This document shows, piece after piece, positions 1-61,706 of a stretch of DNA of 64,000 bases. Made by a program: the position numbers and the translations under genes. How positions within the stretch are numbered: position 1 is the stretch's first letter; the number at the start of each line of letters is the position of its first letter. The notes beneath the pieces were generated by a model that was not told the origin of the DNA, made no database searches, and worked only from the letters and a program-made list of their open reading frames with translations. The DNA comes from Lepidodermella squamata (lineage: Eukaryota; Animalia; Gastrotricha): NCBI GenBank assembly GCA_047495785.1, contig JBLDXI010000064.1, positions 744,001 through 808,000 of the forward strand, given 5' to 3'.

Positions 1-1259
1 TCAAATTATTAAAGAGTGCCGCTGAAAAGTCTATTTCACTGAGAAAGATGAGAAAGTTTAAAAGTTTCGTACATAATTATTTGCCTATTTGCACAGGTCA
101 CGGGTTAGTAATGTAAATCCCAAAAATTTGGGAAAGTTCAGGAATAATGTACAAATAATCAAAGACAAAATTGCAGGAAATCTGAAAACTTCATTAGGAC
201 CACGCAAAATATTCGGAATTGGTGCTGGAAAATGACCGGAACGGTTGGAAAGAAATGTTTACTTTTTGAAAAGGCATGATTAAGTACAAGTGGGCCCTTT
301 GATTAATGAATAATATGAGGCGATTTCGGCTTCACATTTCCATAAGATAGAGACAGGGCCGAAGTCGCTTGCTACGACTCATATTGCTTTTCGAAGTTGG
401 AAACATATTAATAATGTACTTCAACTGCTATTTCAGACGCGAATTTGAGTTGGTGAGTTTTATCGCCATGCTTCTCTCGTTTCTAAACGCTTCCTGTCTC
501 AACTACTACTAATAGTAAAATGAAGCCTTACCGGTCGCGAATACCGGTAAAAATGCCATAGAAACAATTAATTCCCAGAATATTCCCGAGTACCGCAGCG
601 GATGGCTGGGATCATTCGAACAAGTTCACTCGGTCCGTGTCTCGGCACTCCGAAGACCCGGCCAAAGGCAAAAGGCTCGGTACACCTTATGACGATTTCC
701 ATCATCCTTACCAGTTCTGCAGTCCTAGTACCTAGATGGTGAAATAACCTGGTCGATTTCAAGAAATGGCTTTTAAAAAATCAAACTTTTCATGTAAATG
801 TGTTATCCAAGGTTGTCGAAAAATTCGGCGAATAAAATTAAGGAGGGGTTTTTCATTCATTTTTTGTTTAAATGTAGCATCGTGAGTGTGCACTCTGATC
901 ACTACGTACTACGGTCTATATGCTTAAAACAATTCAGGTGTTATGTAAAATGTGAATGAAGCGTCGATATTTAGGCCAAATAAGCCCGACAAATATGTCA
1001 TATTAATCAGTTTTTATGTGTACCAATATATGTAGCAGAGCCGACATATGGCGATACAGAAAATGGCGGATTGACACGTTTTTTTACTTCCGCTTCTAAC
1101 TCGTAATTCGATCCCATATGTGGCGTAGAATCAAAGCTGGGATATTGTGGCTGAGCTCGAACGGAAGCAGGTAAAGCATCATCCACCCATTCAGGAATGG
1201 ACGCAAGGCTCATGGGAAGTTATAGACAATTACTTCAGTAACATTGAAGCCATTCAAAA

Positions 1260-2805
1260 ATGACGAATGCTTCAGCGTCCTTGATTCCGTTCACAAGCTC
1301 GTGGATTCTGGCTGATTTGCCTGACCGTGGCTTCAATGGCTCGAGGCCGTACTTCATCGGCTGGTTCCACGACTTGAGCGCTCAATCGATCGAAGACCGG
1401 CTCCCGTACACGCTAACTGTTTTAATAATGGCGATTCTCGGAAGTCTAGCCAGCATCGCGAACGTCGTAATCTACCACCGCCGCAATGTCAAACGAGACT
1501 TCCTGATGCTGTGCTCTCTGGTTGCGATTAGGAATGTTTTATGGTCCGCAAACTGGTCCTACGCTGTGCTGGTACCTTTGAAGACGGGCTTCTGGGAGGC
1601 AGGCTCAGCAGCTTGCTCTACTGTTTATTGGAACACGGCTACACTGGGCGGCTTCGGCTGTTTCGCGAACATGCTCATCAGCTACGAGAGGCGACTGTGC
1701 GCATGCTCAACATCGCTATACCGCTCCAGTGCATCGAAAGTAAGTCTTTTCCTTGGTCAAGAAGCAACACATGAATCGGGATGCGACACTGTATTGACCT
1801 TAATTAAAGTCAACAGGAAAAATGTCATCCTCTGTCTCGTCTTAGGCATAGAAAATATTCCCCCTCTGTTATTCGACAAAATCTTACAAAAAACCCTCTA
1901 GTTAGAGCTGGCCATATGCAAAAATTGATGCGCTGCATTCCTAGAGTAAATTTGAAAAATCTTCCTTCAACCTCCTTTGTAGGGCAGACATAACTATTGA
2001 ATAACCAAACAGCCAGGAATTTCAATATATGTGATGTTTATTGAGCAGCTTCTTCTGCTAGCTGGTGGGCTCTTGTTACTGTGCGGCGGCTGTGCGGTGG
2101 TTTTCGTATTCGAGCCATACGAAGCGCTGTCCTATCAACGCCTAATCATCGATGGGATGGCGAACAACACGGCTGTGCCTCTTTGCGGGTCTTTCGACCA
2201 TAAATTGATGCGCGAGGCTGATACTGTCGTGCTGATCATAGCGTACTACCTCTTTGCAGTTCAAGCTTCGTCTATCGGACTGGCATGCAACTACTGGTGA
2301 GCGCGGTATAAATCGCAAATTTAAAATGGCTATAATGTGATTTTTTTAAAGGAGGATGTTTGCCCAAATCCGAGCTGTGCGCTTGAGATGGCGAGAGACG
2401 TCGACTATCGAGGAGAAATGGCAAAAGCGTGAGGTTTTTATCGCCAAGCAGTCAATTGCTGCTTTCTTAGTGTACAACGCATTCCACCTACCACTGGCTG
2501 TTCATTTCGCTCTTCAGCTAAGCTACGTCGAAATCGGGCCGCGATTCGCATCCGGCAACCTCATGAAGTACGGCCACGTGTGTTTGCTGGTCGAGATGGT
2601 CGTTTCATCAGTGATCAGATCGCTCAAGCCAGGCTTCACGCGCAGTTTGCTGTGTCTTGGCTACTCGCGTCGCGTCAAAATTGCGCCGTCCAGTGGCAAT
2701 AACAGTAGCACTGGTCAGACCGCAGCGGCGGTGGTTCAGGCATACGCTACACGTGAACAGGATTGGTTTAGCAGGACCAAAGTGCTGATATTCGGTCGAA
2801 AGTGA
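1260..2805 (+). CDS. 7TM class-A-like GPCR, copy 1 (subfamily A); exons 1260-1739, 2049-2296, 2352-2805
   Basis: Hydrophobic helices, TM3 Cys (AACS), ISYERRLC at the E/DRY position, ECL2 Cys (VPLCGSF), TM6 FHLP; phase 0 and phase 2 GT-AG introns shared by all paralogs. Confidence 0.85.
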
Positions 2806-3564
2806 GATCGAAGAGTTGCCTAAGTGATGGTTAACATTTAAAAATTGGTTTAAGTTTAAGCTGGGCAATCATATCCAGGCCAGTTTGACATTATCTATGA
2901 AACAGTTGTGCAAATGGTTTCACATCCCTGCGGTTGTATTTTGTATTTGTCATCATGAAATGTCAATAGTAAGGTAGAGTAATATATACCATTTTCTTTC
3001 TTTAATTTTGCCTATAATGTTTTCACCGATTTGTTACCATAAAAGAGCTTGAGAGTGTGCATATTCTACATTCTAAATAGTCTATTCTACATATGTCGGC
3101 TTGGCGCTTGGATGGTTTATATATGCTTTATGTACTAATTTTTAGCTATTATGTCCTAGCGTTTAGTGTTGAAACAGAAAAAGTAGATCTCTAGAACTGT
3201 CAGGTACAAGGATGAAATAGTCGTTTTAATGAAATCATGCAACCCAAGTCCGTGCACCGCGCATGCGTGAAAACAAAAGCTTCATCTAAGTTCAATCGGA
3301 AAACACTTTGATACTCATCGTTTCCCTGTCTACTTGAACACGCCTAAACGCTTCGAGCAAGCATTGTCGTGGAAATGCCCAACCTTAGCCGTTGCTTCCG
3401 AAATGAAGCAAGCATGTTTGCTCGGGATGAATACCTGTTCCATTAATCATTAATCGAACACGCGTAGGTGGGGCGAATGTAACCTGACGAAAGCATTGAG
3501 AGCATCCGGCCGGCTGATGCGGACGAATCGACACTAGCACTTTGTATTTTACAGACGCCATACA

Positions 3565-36766: not shown

Positions 36767-39700
36767 TCAACAAGACGACTTTGCTCGACTTGCTCCTCTC
36801 GACCTCAGCAAATCGGCCACATCGGTTTTGTTTATGCAAATCGCCAAATCAAGAGCTGTTTTGCCTTCTGTATTTGCGACATCCTTATTTGCGCCTCTAT
36901 CAAGCAACAGTCGAGCTACTTCGACTTCTCCACTCCGAGCCGCAATCATCAACGCCGTCCAGCCATCGTTATCCTTGGCCTCGATGGCAGCGTTGCGATC
37001 CAGCAGCAGTCGAACAGCTTCGACTTGCCCATTATAAGCCGCATGTATCAACGCCGTCCAGCCACTGTTATCCTTGGCCTCGATGGCAGCGTTGCGATCC
37101 AGCAACAGTCTAACTACTTCGACTCCCCCATACCGAGCCGCATGTATCAACGCCGTCCAGCCACTGTTATCCCTGGCCTCGATGGCAGCGTTGCGATCCA
37201 GCAACAGTCTAACTACTTTGACTTGCCCATTCAAAGCCGCATAGATCAACGCCGTCATGCCATTGTTATCCTTGGCCTCGATGGCAGCGTTGCGATCCAG
37301 CAACAGTCGAGCTACTTCGACTTGCCCATACAAAGCCGCAAGCATCAACGCTGTCGTGTTATCTTTATCCCTGGCCTCGGTCGTAACGTTGCGATCCAGC
37401 AACAGTCGAGCTACTTCTAATCGGCCATTCCGAGCAGCAGCCATCAACGCCGTCATGCCATCGTTATTCTTGGCCTCAATAGCAGCCCCGCGATCAAGCA
37501 GCAGTCGAGCTACTTCGACTTGCCCCCAACTAGCCGCAAACATCAACGCTGTCTTGTTATTGTAATTTTCCTTTAAATTCACATCGGCTCCACGATCGAC
37601 AAACAGCTGAGCGATCTGCAATCGCTGGTCGGATCGTGTCCAATTGCACGTAACACTGTGCAGCAGGGTGCCATTTGTCACATAATTCCAATTACCACAG
37701 TAAGTCGTATTTGGGTTGCGCCAGTTCGGCTCGAATTTGCCGCCTGTGGCTTCGTCGATCTCCGCAACGAGTTGCCGCACCTGCGCCACGTCGGCAGTGT
37801 TAAATGTCACATTCCACAACTGTTCGTACACTTCACGGACCTAAATTTAAAAAGACATTAGAAAAATGACGCAATAGAAAATAGATAAAAAAGACTGCGT
37901 AAATAATCCACTACATATTTAGCATACTTATTAATAATTACTAGCATAACAGACGCCCTGGTATCTATCGAAAATCGAAAAACTCGGAAAGGCTATGCAG
38001 GCGACAACGCCACACGAGATGCGAACAATGGTCAGCGAGGCGAACGTTAAGGTTAGCACGCATGCTCCCGTTAGGTCCCGCTACTTCTCTCACTGATATG
38101 CATGTGCATATCCTTCCGCGCCAAACGAAATTTGTTAAATCGGTATTGCGGCATAAAAACTGCTTTTGATTGACCATCCATTTCATTGTTTTAAACTAAT
38201 AATCACCACTAAAGAAAAGGGAACAACACGGCGAAAGGCGGCTAATGTAGACAATTCAGCCAATTAAAGTAGTAAGACAATTGCTAAGTAAGGCACTTGG
38301 TTTCAATAAAATCTCGAGAAATCGATTGAGATACGGCCTGAAAACTGAAAATTATAATGAGCTACTATTCACTCATCATTGGCTTGTATCAGATAGATCT
38401 CCTCAGCTTCAATGAATTCATCGTGTTCTCCTACAACACATTCACATCTTTGGCAGAGCTTTGGATTTGATTTACATTGTAGTCCGGCTTTGCAGGGTCA
38501 AAGTCCATTTTATTCATCACATGTGTTTTTATCGTTTATATAATGTGCCACTGGTGGTGCGGTCGTGAGGTGGCGAGGTGGTATTTTTTTGTACTCTTGC
38601 CTCACTGTTGTCAAATGATTTACCCCATTTATGCACAATAATAATCGCGCCTTGCCGTATGTGTACCATAAAAGTCCGCCCCACATTCATACTGACCTGA
38701 GCTATCGCAAATGATAATGGGCTTTTATAATCAAAACAACGCAAGTCGCGTCTTCTAATTACCCCTGATGTGACACAAAAAGCAGTTGCGACGACAGGAA
38801 AATACGATATATATGATATAAAATGGGTAAACTGTGTGTTTTCGTTTTGTAAAATGCCCGCTGCTTACAGTTTTGAGGTGAGCGTTGACTTGGACTCGAT
38901 AAAGCACCGTTTGGAGCGGATGCCAGCTTCGATTACTGATGTGCAGATTCGTACTCGTAGAGCGCGAGCTGAATTGGCGCAGACTCTTGCTTTGAAGACT
39001 CTACCTTCTACATGGCCATTTTCGCAGATAATGAATGGGGCCATTATGAAATCGGCCAAATTAACCATCGAGTATGATGACATTGGGGTTGTGGAAATCG
39101 AAGTACCCAGCGAAAAGCCAGCTAAATCTAGGGAAAGCGCAAACAATCGTGCTAAAAGGTTATAGAAATTGTCAAGTTATCGAATTTTATTAAATATTTA
39201 TTACTCTAGTCTCGTGATTCTGGGATTGCGTTACGGAATTAACGCCAGCAAGTTGCTAGCAATGCGTCGTTCCATTGGTTTCGAGTCAGTGTCAAAAGAT
39301 TTATTCTATAAAGTTAGGAACGAGCTGGCTGTTTTGCACCCTATAAGCACGATAAGCGACGGAAAGGCGGCTTTCCGATCGGTATTTTCGCTTGCCAGTA
39401 CTTGGGCCCGTAAAGGTGAGTTGAAACCGTCGGTCACTAACGACATTCGACTCCAGGTATAAATAAATTAAAATTCGAGGTAGAATTGAAACTTTATAAG
39501 TGACTGTTTAAGGTGGATGGGATGGCGAGCCGGACGAATTACGCTGACCCCCTTGTCACCGCCTATGTCTGTGTGGCGAGCAGGAAAAGGAAAGCCGGGA
39601 TCGATAATGAAGACCAATTGGCTGTCTATAATGATAACGAGTCAGCGAGTAATTTTCGAGAATATTTACAACCCCCTGTCGACGAGCTTGTAAAACTGGT

Positions 39701-42700
39701 CGAGCAAGGCATAACAGTCGACGGAAAAAGCTACAGTTTCAGACTGCTGACCTGCTGTGATTACCCGGCGCTGGTAAAAATATTTGGCTGTGGTCATCAG
39801 TCGAGTGAAAATCGTTGTGTTATTTGCGAGATGAGCGTCTGAAACCCAACTTTGCCAGCTAAAAGACGCAAGTTCGATGAATATTCGGCCGAAATGGCTG
39901 GGAAGCTGGGGTGGTCGGAAGATTTCGGGCCTATGATTCGGCTAAGCGAGGACAAATTGCTGATAATACCGGACTTCTTCCATCTTCAAGTCAATATTGC
40001 GAAACCACTGATTACCCAGGTTAGCATAGCAAGCGGAAAACTCTTCGAAAAGACATTTCATCCGAAAAATAACTTTAGGTTCTCGGAAAGTTGAGAGCGT
40101 TCAGTCAACGCGAAGCAATCAAAAAAGTCATCGAATTCTTGAAGATTGGGTCGAATTACAAATCATCAGCGGCTTCTTCAAGACGGATCAAGCGAACTCC
40201 GAAAAACTCGAAGCTGTCTATTGACGTCCGCCGAACTTTGAAGGGGAAAGTCAAAGTCAGCATTAAAAATTCGAATCACTACGGCGTTGTTCAGGTAGAA
40301 TTGTGGTAGAGTGAAAATAAAACTTAATTTTGGATTTAAAATTTCAGGCATTCAAGCGATTTACTGAACATATGAGCCAAAATTCGTTGACTGATGCGTT
40401 TTTCTTGCCAAAAAATTGGCAGAGAAAGAAAGTTTTCGGAAAAGTGAAGTCATCTGCCCGAATCAAAGAAAACGACTTTCTTACTTCTTTAGCCGGTCTT
40501 CGGAAGCTTTGCATCGCATCATGTGCCGCGTTTGACGATATCAAGGAAAATCGGAAAAAAGGAAAGGGCAAGTTCTTCATGCCGCGTTATGCATCGCTCT
40601 GGAAGACGCATGTTGGTCCTGTCACGTCATACGCACATCTCCTTTCGAGCCACACATACGAGCTGTTGAAACGAAATATTAATCTGGCCGCTTTGTCCGC
40701 TGAAAGCATCGAACTACTCATCAAAGAGCTGCGCGCAACAGTTAGCAGTCAAACTTCTAATTTCTGGCCGTTGTCTTCTCAGCTCATGAGAATTCAGAAC
40801 ATGAAAGACAATCTGAAAATTTGATACTTCAATTTTGTCAGCTTTACTTCTCATTTCAAGTTTTAATTTTTAAAAGTAAAATTCGAAAATGTAGAAAGAA
40901 TGTTTTTTATTCAGCCTCTACTCTTGAACTCATCATCATCAGATAACACGGCAAAATATCATCTTTTCGTGTACACATACTCATCTCGAGCTCGATCGAA
41001 ATGCAATTCATATTTATCTTGTGCGGACCAGACGAAAGAAAAAAGCCCGGCTCGGCAGAGCTCATCGAGTTTCGAAATTTGCCGGCAGATTGCGTTTTGG
41101 CTTCTGCCAAGTTCAGCATCAAGGTTTTTATCGGACAGAGTAATCCGCATCCAGAATTTTAATAAGCTTTTGGGAGCAGTCGCCAATTTACCGCGTTTCG
41201 TGTAGAAGGCGAACACATGTCGCAATCGATTCCGGTCGCTAAAGGTCCACTCAACGCGTGAATTCGCGGCATGAACTATATAAATTCGGACTATTTAGGA
41301 CTCTCAGTGTCAAGTATTTCCAGATACTAACCTTTGTCAAACCGCTTTGACACCGCCCTGATGTAGTTCCAAGAGCCATAACTTGCCGTAGAAACCGAAG
41401 AGTCGAGCGTTGTATCGCTGATTTCGATGGGCTCGATTTGCTCGGCTTGATGCGCGCCTGCTTGTTCCTGCTGTCCAAATTCCTCATGAAGAAACGATTC
41501 ATCGCCTTCATTTTCCGATAAACCGGTTTCAGACTGCTGATTATTTTTCGATTTGGCGAACATTGATCGAATATCGGCCTGTTTTTCAAAGCGATTGTGC
41601 TGTTGTTGCTGATGATGAGCAGCTCTGCGCTCACTCCTGCGTTGCCTTTTTCGCCGATTGCGTGATCGCGATTTCGCAGTTTCACTCATTTTATTCAGAT
41701 GAATTTCGCAAATAGCTCGAAAAACGAATGGCTTTACGACTGATAAAAATAACAAGTGAACGACTGCACGACCTCACCACCGCACCACCAGCGCGCATAG
41801 CTAAACATAAGACTACTACACACATGATATATAGCAATAATAATTGCACATGAATCATCTAGGTCACTCTGCAAAACCCGGACTTGTATGTAATTTGATT
41901 TACCGCTTAAAACACGGGCCTCCTTCAATTAATCAAGATCAATCGTTGTCCCACGCTAGTACGGGACTAAATCAATCAAATCAAATCATGAAATAGGGAA
42001 CCTTAAGACCATTAAATTAAGACCTTGAGGCCATTAAATTCGTTTAGCGCCTGAATACCGTATTTTATTGAATAGTATCTCGGGTTATCATTTTTTCTGA
42101 ACACGAAAAGTAGTAAAAATATCGGGTAATTATTTGAGGGGGCTTTTGTTTAAGGCAGGCTATTATTTATTCTAAAACGTGAAATCATCACTTCAACCGA
42201 CATTTTTAGTCATCAGCTTGAATATACTCCTCTTTCCTCTTTGGCGCAGTAATTAAGCTTGAATCACCGTAGTTACCGTCCTCGATTTCGCAGTTTCTCT
42301 TCTCTACGCCCCAATGTTTTCTTCTGGCACGCTAGCCACCTCTCCCATTCTTTCCTTGAGCTGATCACACGAGACACTAGACCTATGTGGTATGTGGCTA
42401 TTTACCTCTGGACCCAATATTGGATGCATTTTGGGCCTATTTTTGTTTTCGGAGACAGCTTTTTGCAAAGCTTCGAGCGACTGCGAAGTGAATTTGACGG
42501 AACAGCCCAATTTGCACTTGCATTTTGTCAGCTGAGCTACGGTTTCGAATAACCAACCCTGTTTACTTCAAACTAATTCCTCTCTAACGTGCGTAACTCC
42601 CAATCTCAATCGTTTGGTCTCTTCAACGAACCAGCGGTTCTGTCGATTTGGACGTATAGGGATTACATTCCAGAAATCTTTTTGATCAGCTTTACGAAGT

Positions 42701-60510: not shown

Positions 60511-61706
60511 CCGTGCGCCATGTCTCTTCAACTATATCTTCAACTTGTCATTTTTGCGGTCTAGATCGAATCTCATCCGTACACATAATAACAAATGATC
60601 AGGGCCCAAACAAGCATCTGGTCCATCTGGTCCATCTGGTCCAAACAAGCCCAAACAAGCATCTGCTATCGTTTCGCAGGCGAAAACGTTTTTTCTTAAG
60701 TATTGTCGCCCAAGTCCGAAAGCGACCACATCGCGCTCTGGTCGACCAGGATGCGACGGGCCTACAATCTCTCCTATCAAACACCAATGTCGGGCTTCGG
60801 CTCGTAGGTGTCGACCGAGGTACGGTGGGCTCCAAATCGAGGACAGTGGACGCGCGCGCGCGCATTGTCCCGCCGTGCTCTAGCTCACGCGCGCTCTAGC
60901 TGATTTAATTTGATTTGCCGCCTAAATCACGGGCATCCTTCAATCAATCAAGATGAATCGTTGTCCCACTTGTACGTTGTCCCACATGTAAATCAAATCA
61001 AATCATGGAATAGGGAACCTTGAGACCGCTTTTTCCACGTTGAACTGCTTACCACAGTGATGCGCAAACTCTTGAGGCTTGTGCAGTCGGCGATTTGGTA
61101 TAATAGCTCTGGTTGAGTAAACCATAGATCTAGGCGCCTTAATTTCATGGGGCAATTTTTGCACTTGTACAATTATTTCAGCAGTGTGGCCGGTTAGGGA
61201 CATTTCCGGCCGCCAATATTGTCGGTAATTAAAAAAGTTTGCGCTTCAACTGCGTTCAACTAGCTGAATCACATCACGCCATTCTTCTGTTGCTGATACA
61301 ATGTTCTCTCGACGCTTGAATTCGTGTTTAGGTTTTCAGCTATTTCACAGGAGACTATTGGCGATGCTCGCGTTAATATGAATCAGAAATTCACTGCAAT
61401 TTTTAGGACTCAGTTTTACACGTTTTACACGTGCGCACGGGCGGAAGTTTAAAAGCCGCAGGAAAAAATCATAACATTTCAAAGAAATTTATAGACAAGC
61501 CTGCCATTTTTACACTATTTTCAGCTCGAATTGTTAAGAAATACCGTTAGCTAAAGCTGGCTTTGCTCGCATATTCAGTAATTTAGTTTTTAATTCAGCT
61601 GGCAAGTTGACTACTGGAAAATTCCATAGTTTAAGAGTTTCCATCACTGATAGCAATTGCAAAAGTGCTAGAGAATAAAGAAAATGTTATGTTATGTGTT
61701 ATGATA

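Follow-up and report, generated by a model that had tools for sequence, protein, structure and literature searches.

A compact two-gene transposon with a RAG1-type transposase core in Lepidodermella squamata, a likely member of the CMCT clade

Introduction

The DNA transposon clade CMCT, as described by Kojima in 2025, includes EnSpm/CACTA, Mirage, Chapaev, Transib, Plavaka, ESTA as well as Lanisha, and a C(2)C motif followed by an H(3-4)H motif, CA..TG termini and target-site duplications (TSDs) of 2–5 bp are general to its members (PMC12730594). The transposases of ESTA, a group of EnSpm-like elements with TA TSDs found in rust fungi, resemble RAG1 in profile comparison (PMC12730594). Within the clade, solved transposase structures are limited to Transib/RAG. 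The En/Spm (CACTA) elements have CACTA ends, a 3-bp TSD, short subterminal repeat arrays and a second encoded protein. The two En/Spm proteins are produced by alternative splicing of one transcript.

The element described here is located in a stretch of 64,000 nucleotides from the gastrotrich Lepidodermella squamata, referred to as the window. Like the members of the CMCT clade, it has the zinc motifs (RCVIC and HLLSSH, then LSAE), 5'-CA..TG-3' ends and a TSD within the 2–5 bp range, but no curated model matched it above threshold, its partner gene is family-specific, and the assignment stops at the clade level. It shares with En/Spm a Transposase_21 signal, which is the best one found although sub-threshold, as well as the subterminal arrays and the second protein. 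However, its ends are CATTG rather than CACTA, its TSD is a 2-bp TA, its transposase is far smaller, and its two proteins are encoded by separate convergent genes. A TA or 2-bp duplication is also found in ESTA, compared by description only, and in Mirage, but the present element comes from a small animal and not from a rust fungus. The pre-RNase H, RNase H and ZnC2 core fold and the order of the zinc motifs are common to Transib, RAG1 and ProtoRAG, from which the element differs in the lack of a CACWATG heptamer-like end, of a 5-bp TSD and of detectable profile similarity. ProtoRAG has the same convergent two-gene layout, but the partner there is a kelch propeller while here it is a 224-amino acid helical protein. 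We consider it likely that the locus is an autonomous-type cut-and-paste DNA transposon of the CMCT clade, inserted by chance in a host intron, with a second gene (gene B) travelling along. It is a rare lineage of a known kind, which matched no curated family in the searches made.

Results and Discussion

The transposon occupies positions 38475–41890 (3416 bp), as determined from contigs of the public run X1, the alignment of its terminal inverted repeats (TIRs) and the termini of the relatives L006, L007 and L008. Its termini are 5'-CA..TG-3', and a TA dinucleotide is found immediately outside each of them, at 38473–38474 and 41891–41892. An earlier note, made from the sequence of the window alone, had placed the limits at 38520 and 41826, with TGT...ACA ends and a 4-bp CATG TSD. 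None of the three held, since a multi-copy X1 contig runs uninterrupted through 38520 and stops exactly at 38475, X1 contigs continue beyond 41890 into a different flank, and the likeness between the inverted repeats reaches outward to 38475 and 41890. The left TIR (38475–38600, plus strand), whose terminal 26 nt start with CATTGTAGTCCGG, and the reverse complement of the right one (41765–41890, minus strand) are long and imperfect, and can be aligned over about 110–125 nt with indels. The termini of the element can be written as CATTGTAG...(CTACAATG), flanked by TA/TA, and read CATTG...TATG in the window copy. Homologous termini, starting with CATTATAAC, mark the two ends of L006, open the contig L008 and occur in L007 as well; the left TIR and the L006 terminus share approximately 75% identity over 33 nt. 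L006 ends in CATTA...TAATG between ATG/ATG flanks, which suggests a putative 3-bp duplication in this relative. Two of the relatives whose termini match come from metagenomes.

The same note had described TIRs flanked by CATG. The inverted repeat at 38551–38582 and 41760–41791 and both CATG sequences do exist, but the latter belong within the long imperfect TIRs, and the repeat consists of two subterminal arrays of 8-nt units. The left array (plus strand) has about four units with the consensus NGGTSGTG, and in the right one (minus strand) TRF detected a period of 8 with 3.0 copies at 41766–41789. A search for the array pattern returned 2 sites against 0 expected. In the relatives L004 and L006 the 8-nt arrays are located as far from the end of the element as in the window copy.

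These features bear on a nested arrangement, in which an inner element at 38520–41826 would sit inside a short unrelated MITE that contributed the outer 45–65 bp on each side. The X1 depth is greater over 38427–38553 than within the element, and some X1 contigs share just the terminal 32–43 nt and diverge beyond them, which indicates that short relatives bear the same ends. However, MITEs normally have the same ends as their autonomous partner, the multi-copy contig passes 38520 unbroken, and the inner limits fit no TSD. Furthermore, the outer termini of the independent relatives L006 and L004 are homologous and lie about 60–80 nt ahead of the 8-nt arrays and the transposase gene in each. We regard the nested arrangement as very improbable.

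The TA duplication was assessed by comparison with the paralogous unit of the host gene cluster, where the site is empty. At 60903–60917 the sequence reads GATT-TA-ATTTGATTT, with the TA present once. The right flank of the transposon (41888–42010) and 60903–61027 share 83% identity, and the homology starts at 41888–41893. Junctions of other copies in X1 (...CAATG|TA|GTTGC, ...GTATG|TA|ATTCTC and CTC|TA|CATTG) also have the TA, whereas one X2 junction has TT instead. The duplication is based on one complete copy and one-sided contig junctions. That 9 bp (ATTTGATTT) are duplicated in the flanks was considered and rejected, because the paralogue shows that this sequence is a near-repeat around a single TA that predates the insertion. 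A joint between 38473 and 41960 observed in X1 did not match a precise excision and was taken as an alignment effect of inverted flank repeats.

The host gene, of the trypsin-sushi-ankyrin type, is on the minus strand, and a large intron in it contains the transposon. The contig depths in X1, about 477 for a contig that is unbroken over 38475–41136 and about 49 for the flank, indicate a family of approximately ten copies, a rough measure, and the copies are near-identical. Neither other copies nor solo ends were found elsewhere in the 64,000-nt window. The family looks young. Since it is multi-copy and the paralogous unit has the site empty, its location inside this intron is incidental, as the earlier note had supposed. 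The window copy is probably non-autonomous: it carries a private CGA-to-TGA change in the transposase gene and a diverged right terminus, which reads CCGGACTTGTATG where another X1 copy has CCGGACTACAATG. That both genes could instead be domesticated, immobile host genes is scarcely credible. In favor of this, the two frames are both long and interrupted by introns, and gene B is seemingly transcribed in X2, but the TIRs and the TA duplication, the empty site in the paralogue, a depth about ten-fold over that of the flanks, and near-identical copies with a nonsense codon in the window copy alone all argue against it.

Gene A, on the plus strand, has five exons separated by GT-AG introns of 51–59 nt and comprises 583 codons with one in-frame TGA. 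Exon 1 (38854–39158) was located by its ATG and an N-terminus that aligns with the start of the L004 homologue, and ends at a GT donor. Exon 2 (39210–39456), which includes the pre-RNase H region, has AG/GT sites and is joined to exon 3 in P0004, L004 and L006. Exon 3 (39513–40019) includes the first D (QVDG), the second D (CCDY) and the CxxC motif (RCVIC), and was identified by these motifs, the Transposase_21 signal and an AF2 model. Exon 4 (40079–40294) was defined by its GT-AG sites and frame, and its end aligns with L004 and L006 over the junction with exon 5. Exon 5 (40348–40824) includes the HxxxxH motif (HLLSSH) and the catalytic E (LSAE), both unchanged in the L004 homologue. Homologues that run uninterrupted over the two junctions bear out introns 2 and 4. 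The five motifs, present in gene A in the order of the RAG1 core as had been read from the sequence, are conserved among the relatives. In the AF2 model of the homologue P0004, both D residues are located at the ends of beta1 and beta4. The in-frame TGA, codon 294 at 39840–39842, was confirmed as the single nonsense codon; it is at a CpG position, and because the majority X1 contig has a C at 39840, making the codon CGA (Arg), it is private to the window copy.

Gene B, on the minus strand, has two exons and encodes 224 amino acids. Its stop codon is 134 bp from that of gene A, in agreement with the tail-to-tail arrangement between TIRs that had been proposed. Exon 1 (41332–41689) encodes a basic NLS-like stretch and then an acidic low-complexity region, and exon 2 (40959–41275) encodes the conserved C-terminal domain, which has homologues in L004 and L006. 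An X2 contig omits 41276–41331, which is exactly the predicted intron. Gene B appears to be transcribed on the basis of this spliced contig, X2 being only guessed to be RNA. The gene B homologues in L004 (E 4e-10) and L006 (E 9e-8), with about 40% identity, are also convergent to the transposase.

The partner had been described as not kelch-like, and this was upheld: gene B matched neither kelch nor any other family in Pfam, and its AF2 model is mostly helical (pLDDT 51). A Foldseek search of the PDB with this model returned nothing significant. Three weak leads were obtained: features pointed to Rap1-Myb (0.87), shape to an HU/CCDC81-like fold (TM<0.5), and a profile to an NtrC Fis-type HTH (E 0.17). 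We left the fold unnamed because these leads disagree with one another. An accessory role in DNA binding or assembly may be supposed for gene B, perhaps at the 8-nt subterminal arrays.

The structural comparisons and database searches for the transposase were carried out with the homologue P0004 and with single exons in place of full-length spliced proteins. In the Foldseek comparison with RAG1 and HzTransib that the earlier note had proposed, the best 47 PDB matches of the P0004 model were all RAG1, RAGL or Transib. VIA-align gave a Z of 10.6 for RAG1 (222 amino acids aligned), 8.4 for BbRAGL and 7.5 for HzTransib, and 6.2 for the next unrelated chain. However, the PDB has no CMC transposase, and therefore this ranking cannot separate Transib from CMC. 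When the Atlas was searched by shape, plant Transposase_21/DUF4218 clusters and RAG1 clusters alike gave TM values of 0.64–0.69, that is, the model is matched no less well by predicted plant CACTA transposases than by RAG1. By language-model features, Transposase_21 was found in 14 of the 30 nearest Atlas clusters and RAG1 families in two. For the C-terminal (exon 5) piece the nearest named Atlas cluster was RAG1_ZnH2 (0.92, flagged as often a chance result). Because the CACTA clusters fit equally and the motifs are clade-wide, neither fold nor motifs discriminate in favor of RAG1/Transib.

The sequence comparisons gave weak signals, all of them to CMC families in Pfam, whose equivalences to the CMC groups are known (PMC3985635). 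Exon 3 of gene A matched Transposase_21 with a sub-threshold E of 2.8e-4, and the same family was matched by 3 of 12 members and by 7 of 44 (best 9e-5), the signal being near the second D and the CxxC. DUF1258 (Mirage) was matched to 8e-5, with only one or two weak matches, and DUF1280 (Chapaev) at 0.009–0.016. The gathering threshold (28.6) was reached by no CMC family, the best matches, which recurred across members, being at about 20 bits. The Pfam RAG1 families gave no match at E<=1, and a search of all PDB sequences at E<=10 with a core profile (A1) and a C-terminal one (A4) turned up no chain of RAG1, RAGL or Transib.

In the light of these results, the proposal of a RAG1-related lineage was sustained as to the RAG1-like fold but not as to sequence affinity. 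A true element of the Transib/RAG1 lineage, with Transib rather than CACTA, Mirage or Chapaev as its closer kin, a TA duplication that is non-canonical and a partner other than RAG2, would be consistent with RAG1, BbRAGL and HzTransib as the top solved-structure matches and with the RAG1_ZnH2 result. Transib relatives with 3-bp and TA duplications exist, and because the TSD varies within Transib its length cannot exclude this group (preprint 10.64898/2026.08.26.747230). Against this origin stand the equal fit of the predicted CACTA transposases, a PDB ranking made non-discriminating by the lack of CMC structures, termini that are not CACWATG-like, profiles of the family that retrieve no chain of this lineage, and weak matches to three CMC families where Pfam RAG1 gives none. 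We find it unlikely. It is somewhat more doubtful still that the family is a deep separate CMCT branch, closer to Transib/RAG1 than are the classical CMC groups, with the partner as an obligate cofactor, and that non-kelch two-gene RAG-like systems arose independently of ProtoRAG.

In the favored explanation, a transposon of the CMCT clade, the product of gene A is a DDE transposase about 583 amino acids long with a RAG1-type pre-RNase H/RNase H core and a C2H2 zinc site. This enzyme would bind the long imperfect TIRs, cut at the 5'-CA..TG-3' termini, and integrate the element at TA with a 2-bp stagger. The convergently transcribed gene B, with its basic N-terminus and conserved helical C-terminal domain, accompanies the transposase in diverged relatives, and its putative accessory role would be analogous to that of En/Spm TnpA or the Harbinger Myb-like protein.

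A RAG1-type fold with this order of zinc motifs is no evidence of RAG1 ancestry, as both are found in a rare lineage of animal transposons that is weakly tied by sequence to CACTA, Mirage and Chapaev. The analysis also corrects the annotation of the window with respect to the true ends, the TA duplication and the private nonsense codon. A compact 3.4-kb family that looks young and has conserved termini, 8-nt arrays and a partner gene is tractable for questions about accessory proteins in the CMCT clade.

Searches for further relatives differed in their yield. A word search with exon 5 alone as the query gave no matches, and two conserved peptide patterns run against JGI metagenome contigs found no relative. 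With exon 3a as the query, an exhaustive phmmer search of 1.84 billion representatives identified only seven matches. All were unnamed fragments, of which metagenome collections (ENA, JGI) contributed six and a Logan assembly made from a public run the seventh.

Gene organization

The 38.4-41.9 kb region holds a convergent pair of spliced genes. Gene A, the transposase gene, lies on the plus strand and consists of five exons (38854-39158, 39210-39456, 39513-40019, 40079-40294 and 40348-40824) with GT-AG introns of 51-59 nt; it has 583 codons, including one in-frame TGA at 39840-39842. Its partner on the minus strand, gene B, has two exons (41689-41332 and 41275-40959) and encodes a 224-aa product. 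Between the two stop codons lie 134 bp. This layout, five exons facing two and a single nonsense codon, is the one described in an earlier note on this DNA. The ATG at 38854 aligns with the start of the homologue on contig L004, and the gene A introns at the exon 2/3 and exon 4/5 junctions are confirmed because homologues on metagenome contigs continue uninterrupted over both. The predicted gene B intron (41276-41331) is exactly absent from one contig of the public sequencing run X2, which we guess to be RNA. Coverage by X2 is far better for gene B than for gene A. The X2 contigs also join opposite strands at 38570/38671, 41041/41144, 41238/41402 and 41605/41715; these joins may be low-coverage assembly artefacts or fold-back molecules.

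Limits of the element and target site

The earlier note drew the element at 38520-41826, with TGT...ACA ends and a 4-bp CATG duplication. The inner inverted repeat (38551-38582 / 41760-41791) is real, and the similarity between the arms extends outward, with indels, as far as 38475 and 41890. The 38520 boundary did not hold: one contig of a second public run, X1, spans 38475-41136 at a depth of about 477, is unbroken over 38520 and stops exactly at 38475. Both CATG copies are interior TIR sequence. A second X1 contig runs to the element's right end and then into another flank (...GTATG, TA, ATTCTC...), and in another contig the copy's terminus is perfect (...CCGGACTACAATG, TA, GTTGC...), a form from which the right terminus of the window copy departs. 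On the left side, an X2 contig reads CTC, TA, CATTG. In the window, TA lies immediately outside both ends. From about 41888 onward, the right flank matches 60903-61027 at 83% identity; those positions belong to a different unit of the host gene cluster, in which the paralogous site reads GATT-TA-ATTTGATTT with one TA only.

Relatives on other contigs have comparable termini. Both ends of the relative on L006 read CATTATAACTYGRTTTT, contig L008 starts exactly at this terminus, and over its first 33 nt the L006 end shares about 75% identity with the window left end, while the transposases share only about 40%. Taken together, the arm alignment, the X1 and X2 contigs, the flanks with the paralogous site and the termini of the relatives place the element at 38475-41890 (3416 bp). 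Its termini are 5'-CA..TG-3', its TIRs are long and imperfect, and it is flanked by a TA duplication, based on one complete copy and one-sided contig junctions. A 9-bp flank match (ATTTGATTT) was also considered as the duplication and rejected; it is a pre-existing near-repeat, since the paralogous site carries it with a single TA. Just upstream of that empty site, a GC-rich stretch with a GCGCGC run (60840-60900) is without counterpart in the insertion's left flank, so a further indel separates the units at this point.

The host gene lies on the minus strand and comprises signal peptide and trypsin-like protease exons (about 44980-43650), a sushi-like exon (about 43500-43075) and a long ankyrin-repeat exon (37831-36767). 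The element sits in the intron between the last two, with gene A antisense to the host gene. Its position there is incidental, as had been thought probable, because the site is empty in the paralogous unit and the family is multi-copy.

Copies and relatives

Unique flank contigs in X1 have a depth of about 49. The depth ratio suggests a family of roughly ten copies; contig depths being means, this number is approximate. Over 2660 nt, six positions and one 2-nt indel distinguish the window copy from the X1 majority contig. At 39840 the majority has C, within a CpG, and the codon reads CGA (Arg) instead of TGA; thus, the nonsense codon is private to the window copy or rare. The remaining differences fall in non-coding sequence, are synonymous or give N379K. 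The majority form looks open, and the family young. Around the two ends (38427-38553 and 41850-41892), the terminal 32-43 nt have a higher summed depth in X1 than the inside of the element, and some contigs leave the element sequence a little way in from these termini, which suggests short non-autonomous (MITE-like) relatives with the same ends.

The relative at L006:264-3511, on an ENA metagenome contig, is complete (3248 bp). It has 17-nt TIRs (CATTATAACTYGRTTTT); its transposase gene is interrupted by fewer introns, and a gene B homologue lies convergent to it. Its flanks are ATG/ATG, so its duplication may be of 3 bp. About 75 nt inward from the window left end there are roughly four tandem 8-nt units (NGGTSGTG), with a matching array in the right arm. 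L004 and L006 carry 8-nt arrays of other sequence 60-80 nt from their left termini: about eight GAGTGTCG-like units in L006, and CCGGCACA-like units at L004:4603-4650, upstream of the transposase. L004 also holds an unrelated minus-strand ORF of 644 aa (1233-3167) with no Pfam match.

The transposase

The motifs QVDG, C(C/S/A)DY, R-C-x-I-C, PD-x-FH-x-x-x-NI, HLL-x-x-H and LSAE are kept in the window copy and its relatives. Among 1.84 billion representative proteins, phmmer with exon 3a as the query matched seven, four of them at E<1e-10. All seven are fragments without a name; one comes from a Logan assembly of a public run, and the other six belong to metagenome collections (ENA, JGI). More distant matches came from a profile word search: hypothetical proteins of fungi, an alga and insects, none of them assigned to a Pfam family.

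For folding we used P0004, an uninterrupted 253-aa homologue spanning exons 2-3, with a 12-row alignment. The model (mean pLDDT 64; core 80-93) predicts an RNase H-like fold, with one of the two aspartates at the end of beta1 and the other at the end of beta4. The top 47 Foldseek matches in the PDB were only RAG1, BbRAGL and HzTransib (best E 9.7e-5). An exhaustive VIA-align pass gave Z 10.6 for RAG1 (222 residues aligned, rmsd 4.2), 8.4 for BbRAGL and 7.5 for HzTransib, the next unrelated chain scoring 6.2. This match to the RAG1 core is non-discriminating, because no structure of a CACTA, Mirage or Chapaev transposase is in the PDB and because, in the ESM Atlas, RAG1 clusters (TM 0.65-0.69) and plant Transposase_21/DUF4218 clusters (0.65) fit the model equally well. 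Clusters from Mucoromycota and Rotifera, which are unnamed, fit similarly.

The earlier note had suggested a possible distinct RAG1-related lineage. The fold is RAG1-like, but at E<=10 profiles of the core and C-terminal part matched neither RAG1 nor Transib chains in the PDB, and no RAG1 family was found in Pfam at E<=1. Recurrent sub-threshold Pfam matches were to Transposase_21 (best 9e-5; 7 of the 44 members of a wider set), DUF1258 (8e-5) and DUF1280 (about 0.01). Majorek et al. (PMC3985635) identify these three families with the CACTA, Mirage and Chapaev transposases. By language-model features, Transposase_21 clusters were nearest to exon 3a (14/30); RAG1_ZnH2 was nearest to exon 5, which is a lead only. 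The TA duplication alone is indecisive, since duplication length varies even within Transib (2026 preprint, 10.64898/2026.08.26.747230). The enzyme is a member of the CACTA/Mirage/Chapaev/Transib clade, placed to clade level only, and its weak sequence ties are on the CACTA, Mirage and Chapaev side.

The partner gene

Both L004 (E 4e-10) and L006 (E 9e-8) carry a gene B homologue in convergent orientation with the transposase gene; therefore, the two-gene layout is a trait of the lineage. In the gene B protein, a basic stretch at the N-terminus and an acidic region accompany a conserved C-terminal domain of about 100 aa, with no Pfam family found. It is clearly no kelch propeller, as the earlier note had held. 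The AF2 model of exon 2 was poor (pLDDT 51; helices, then a hairpin), and fold searches with it gave no significant match. Three weak leads, all pointing to small DNA-binding domains, are mutually discordant: features suggest Rap1-Myb, shape HU/CCDC81 and the profile an NtrC-type HTH. By analogy, the protein may be an accessory DNA-binding or assembly factor.
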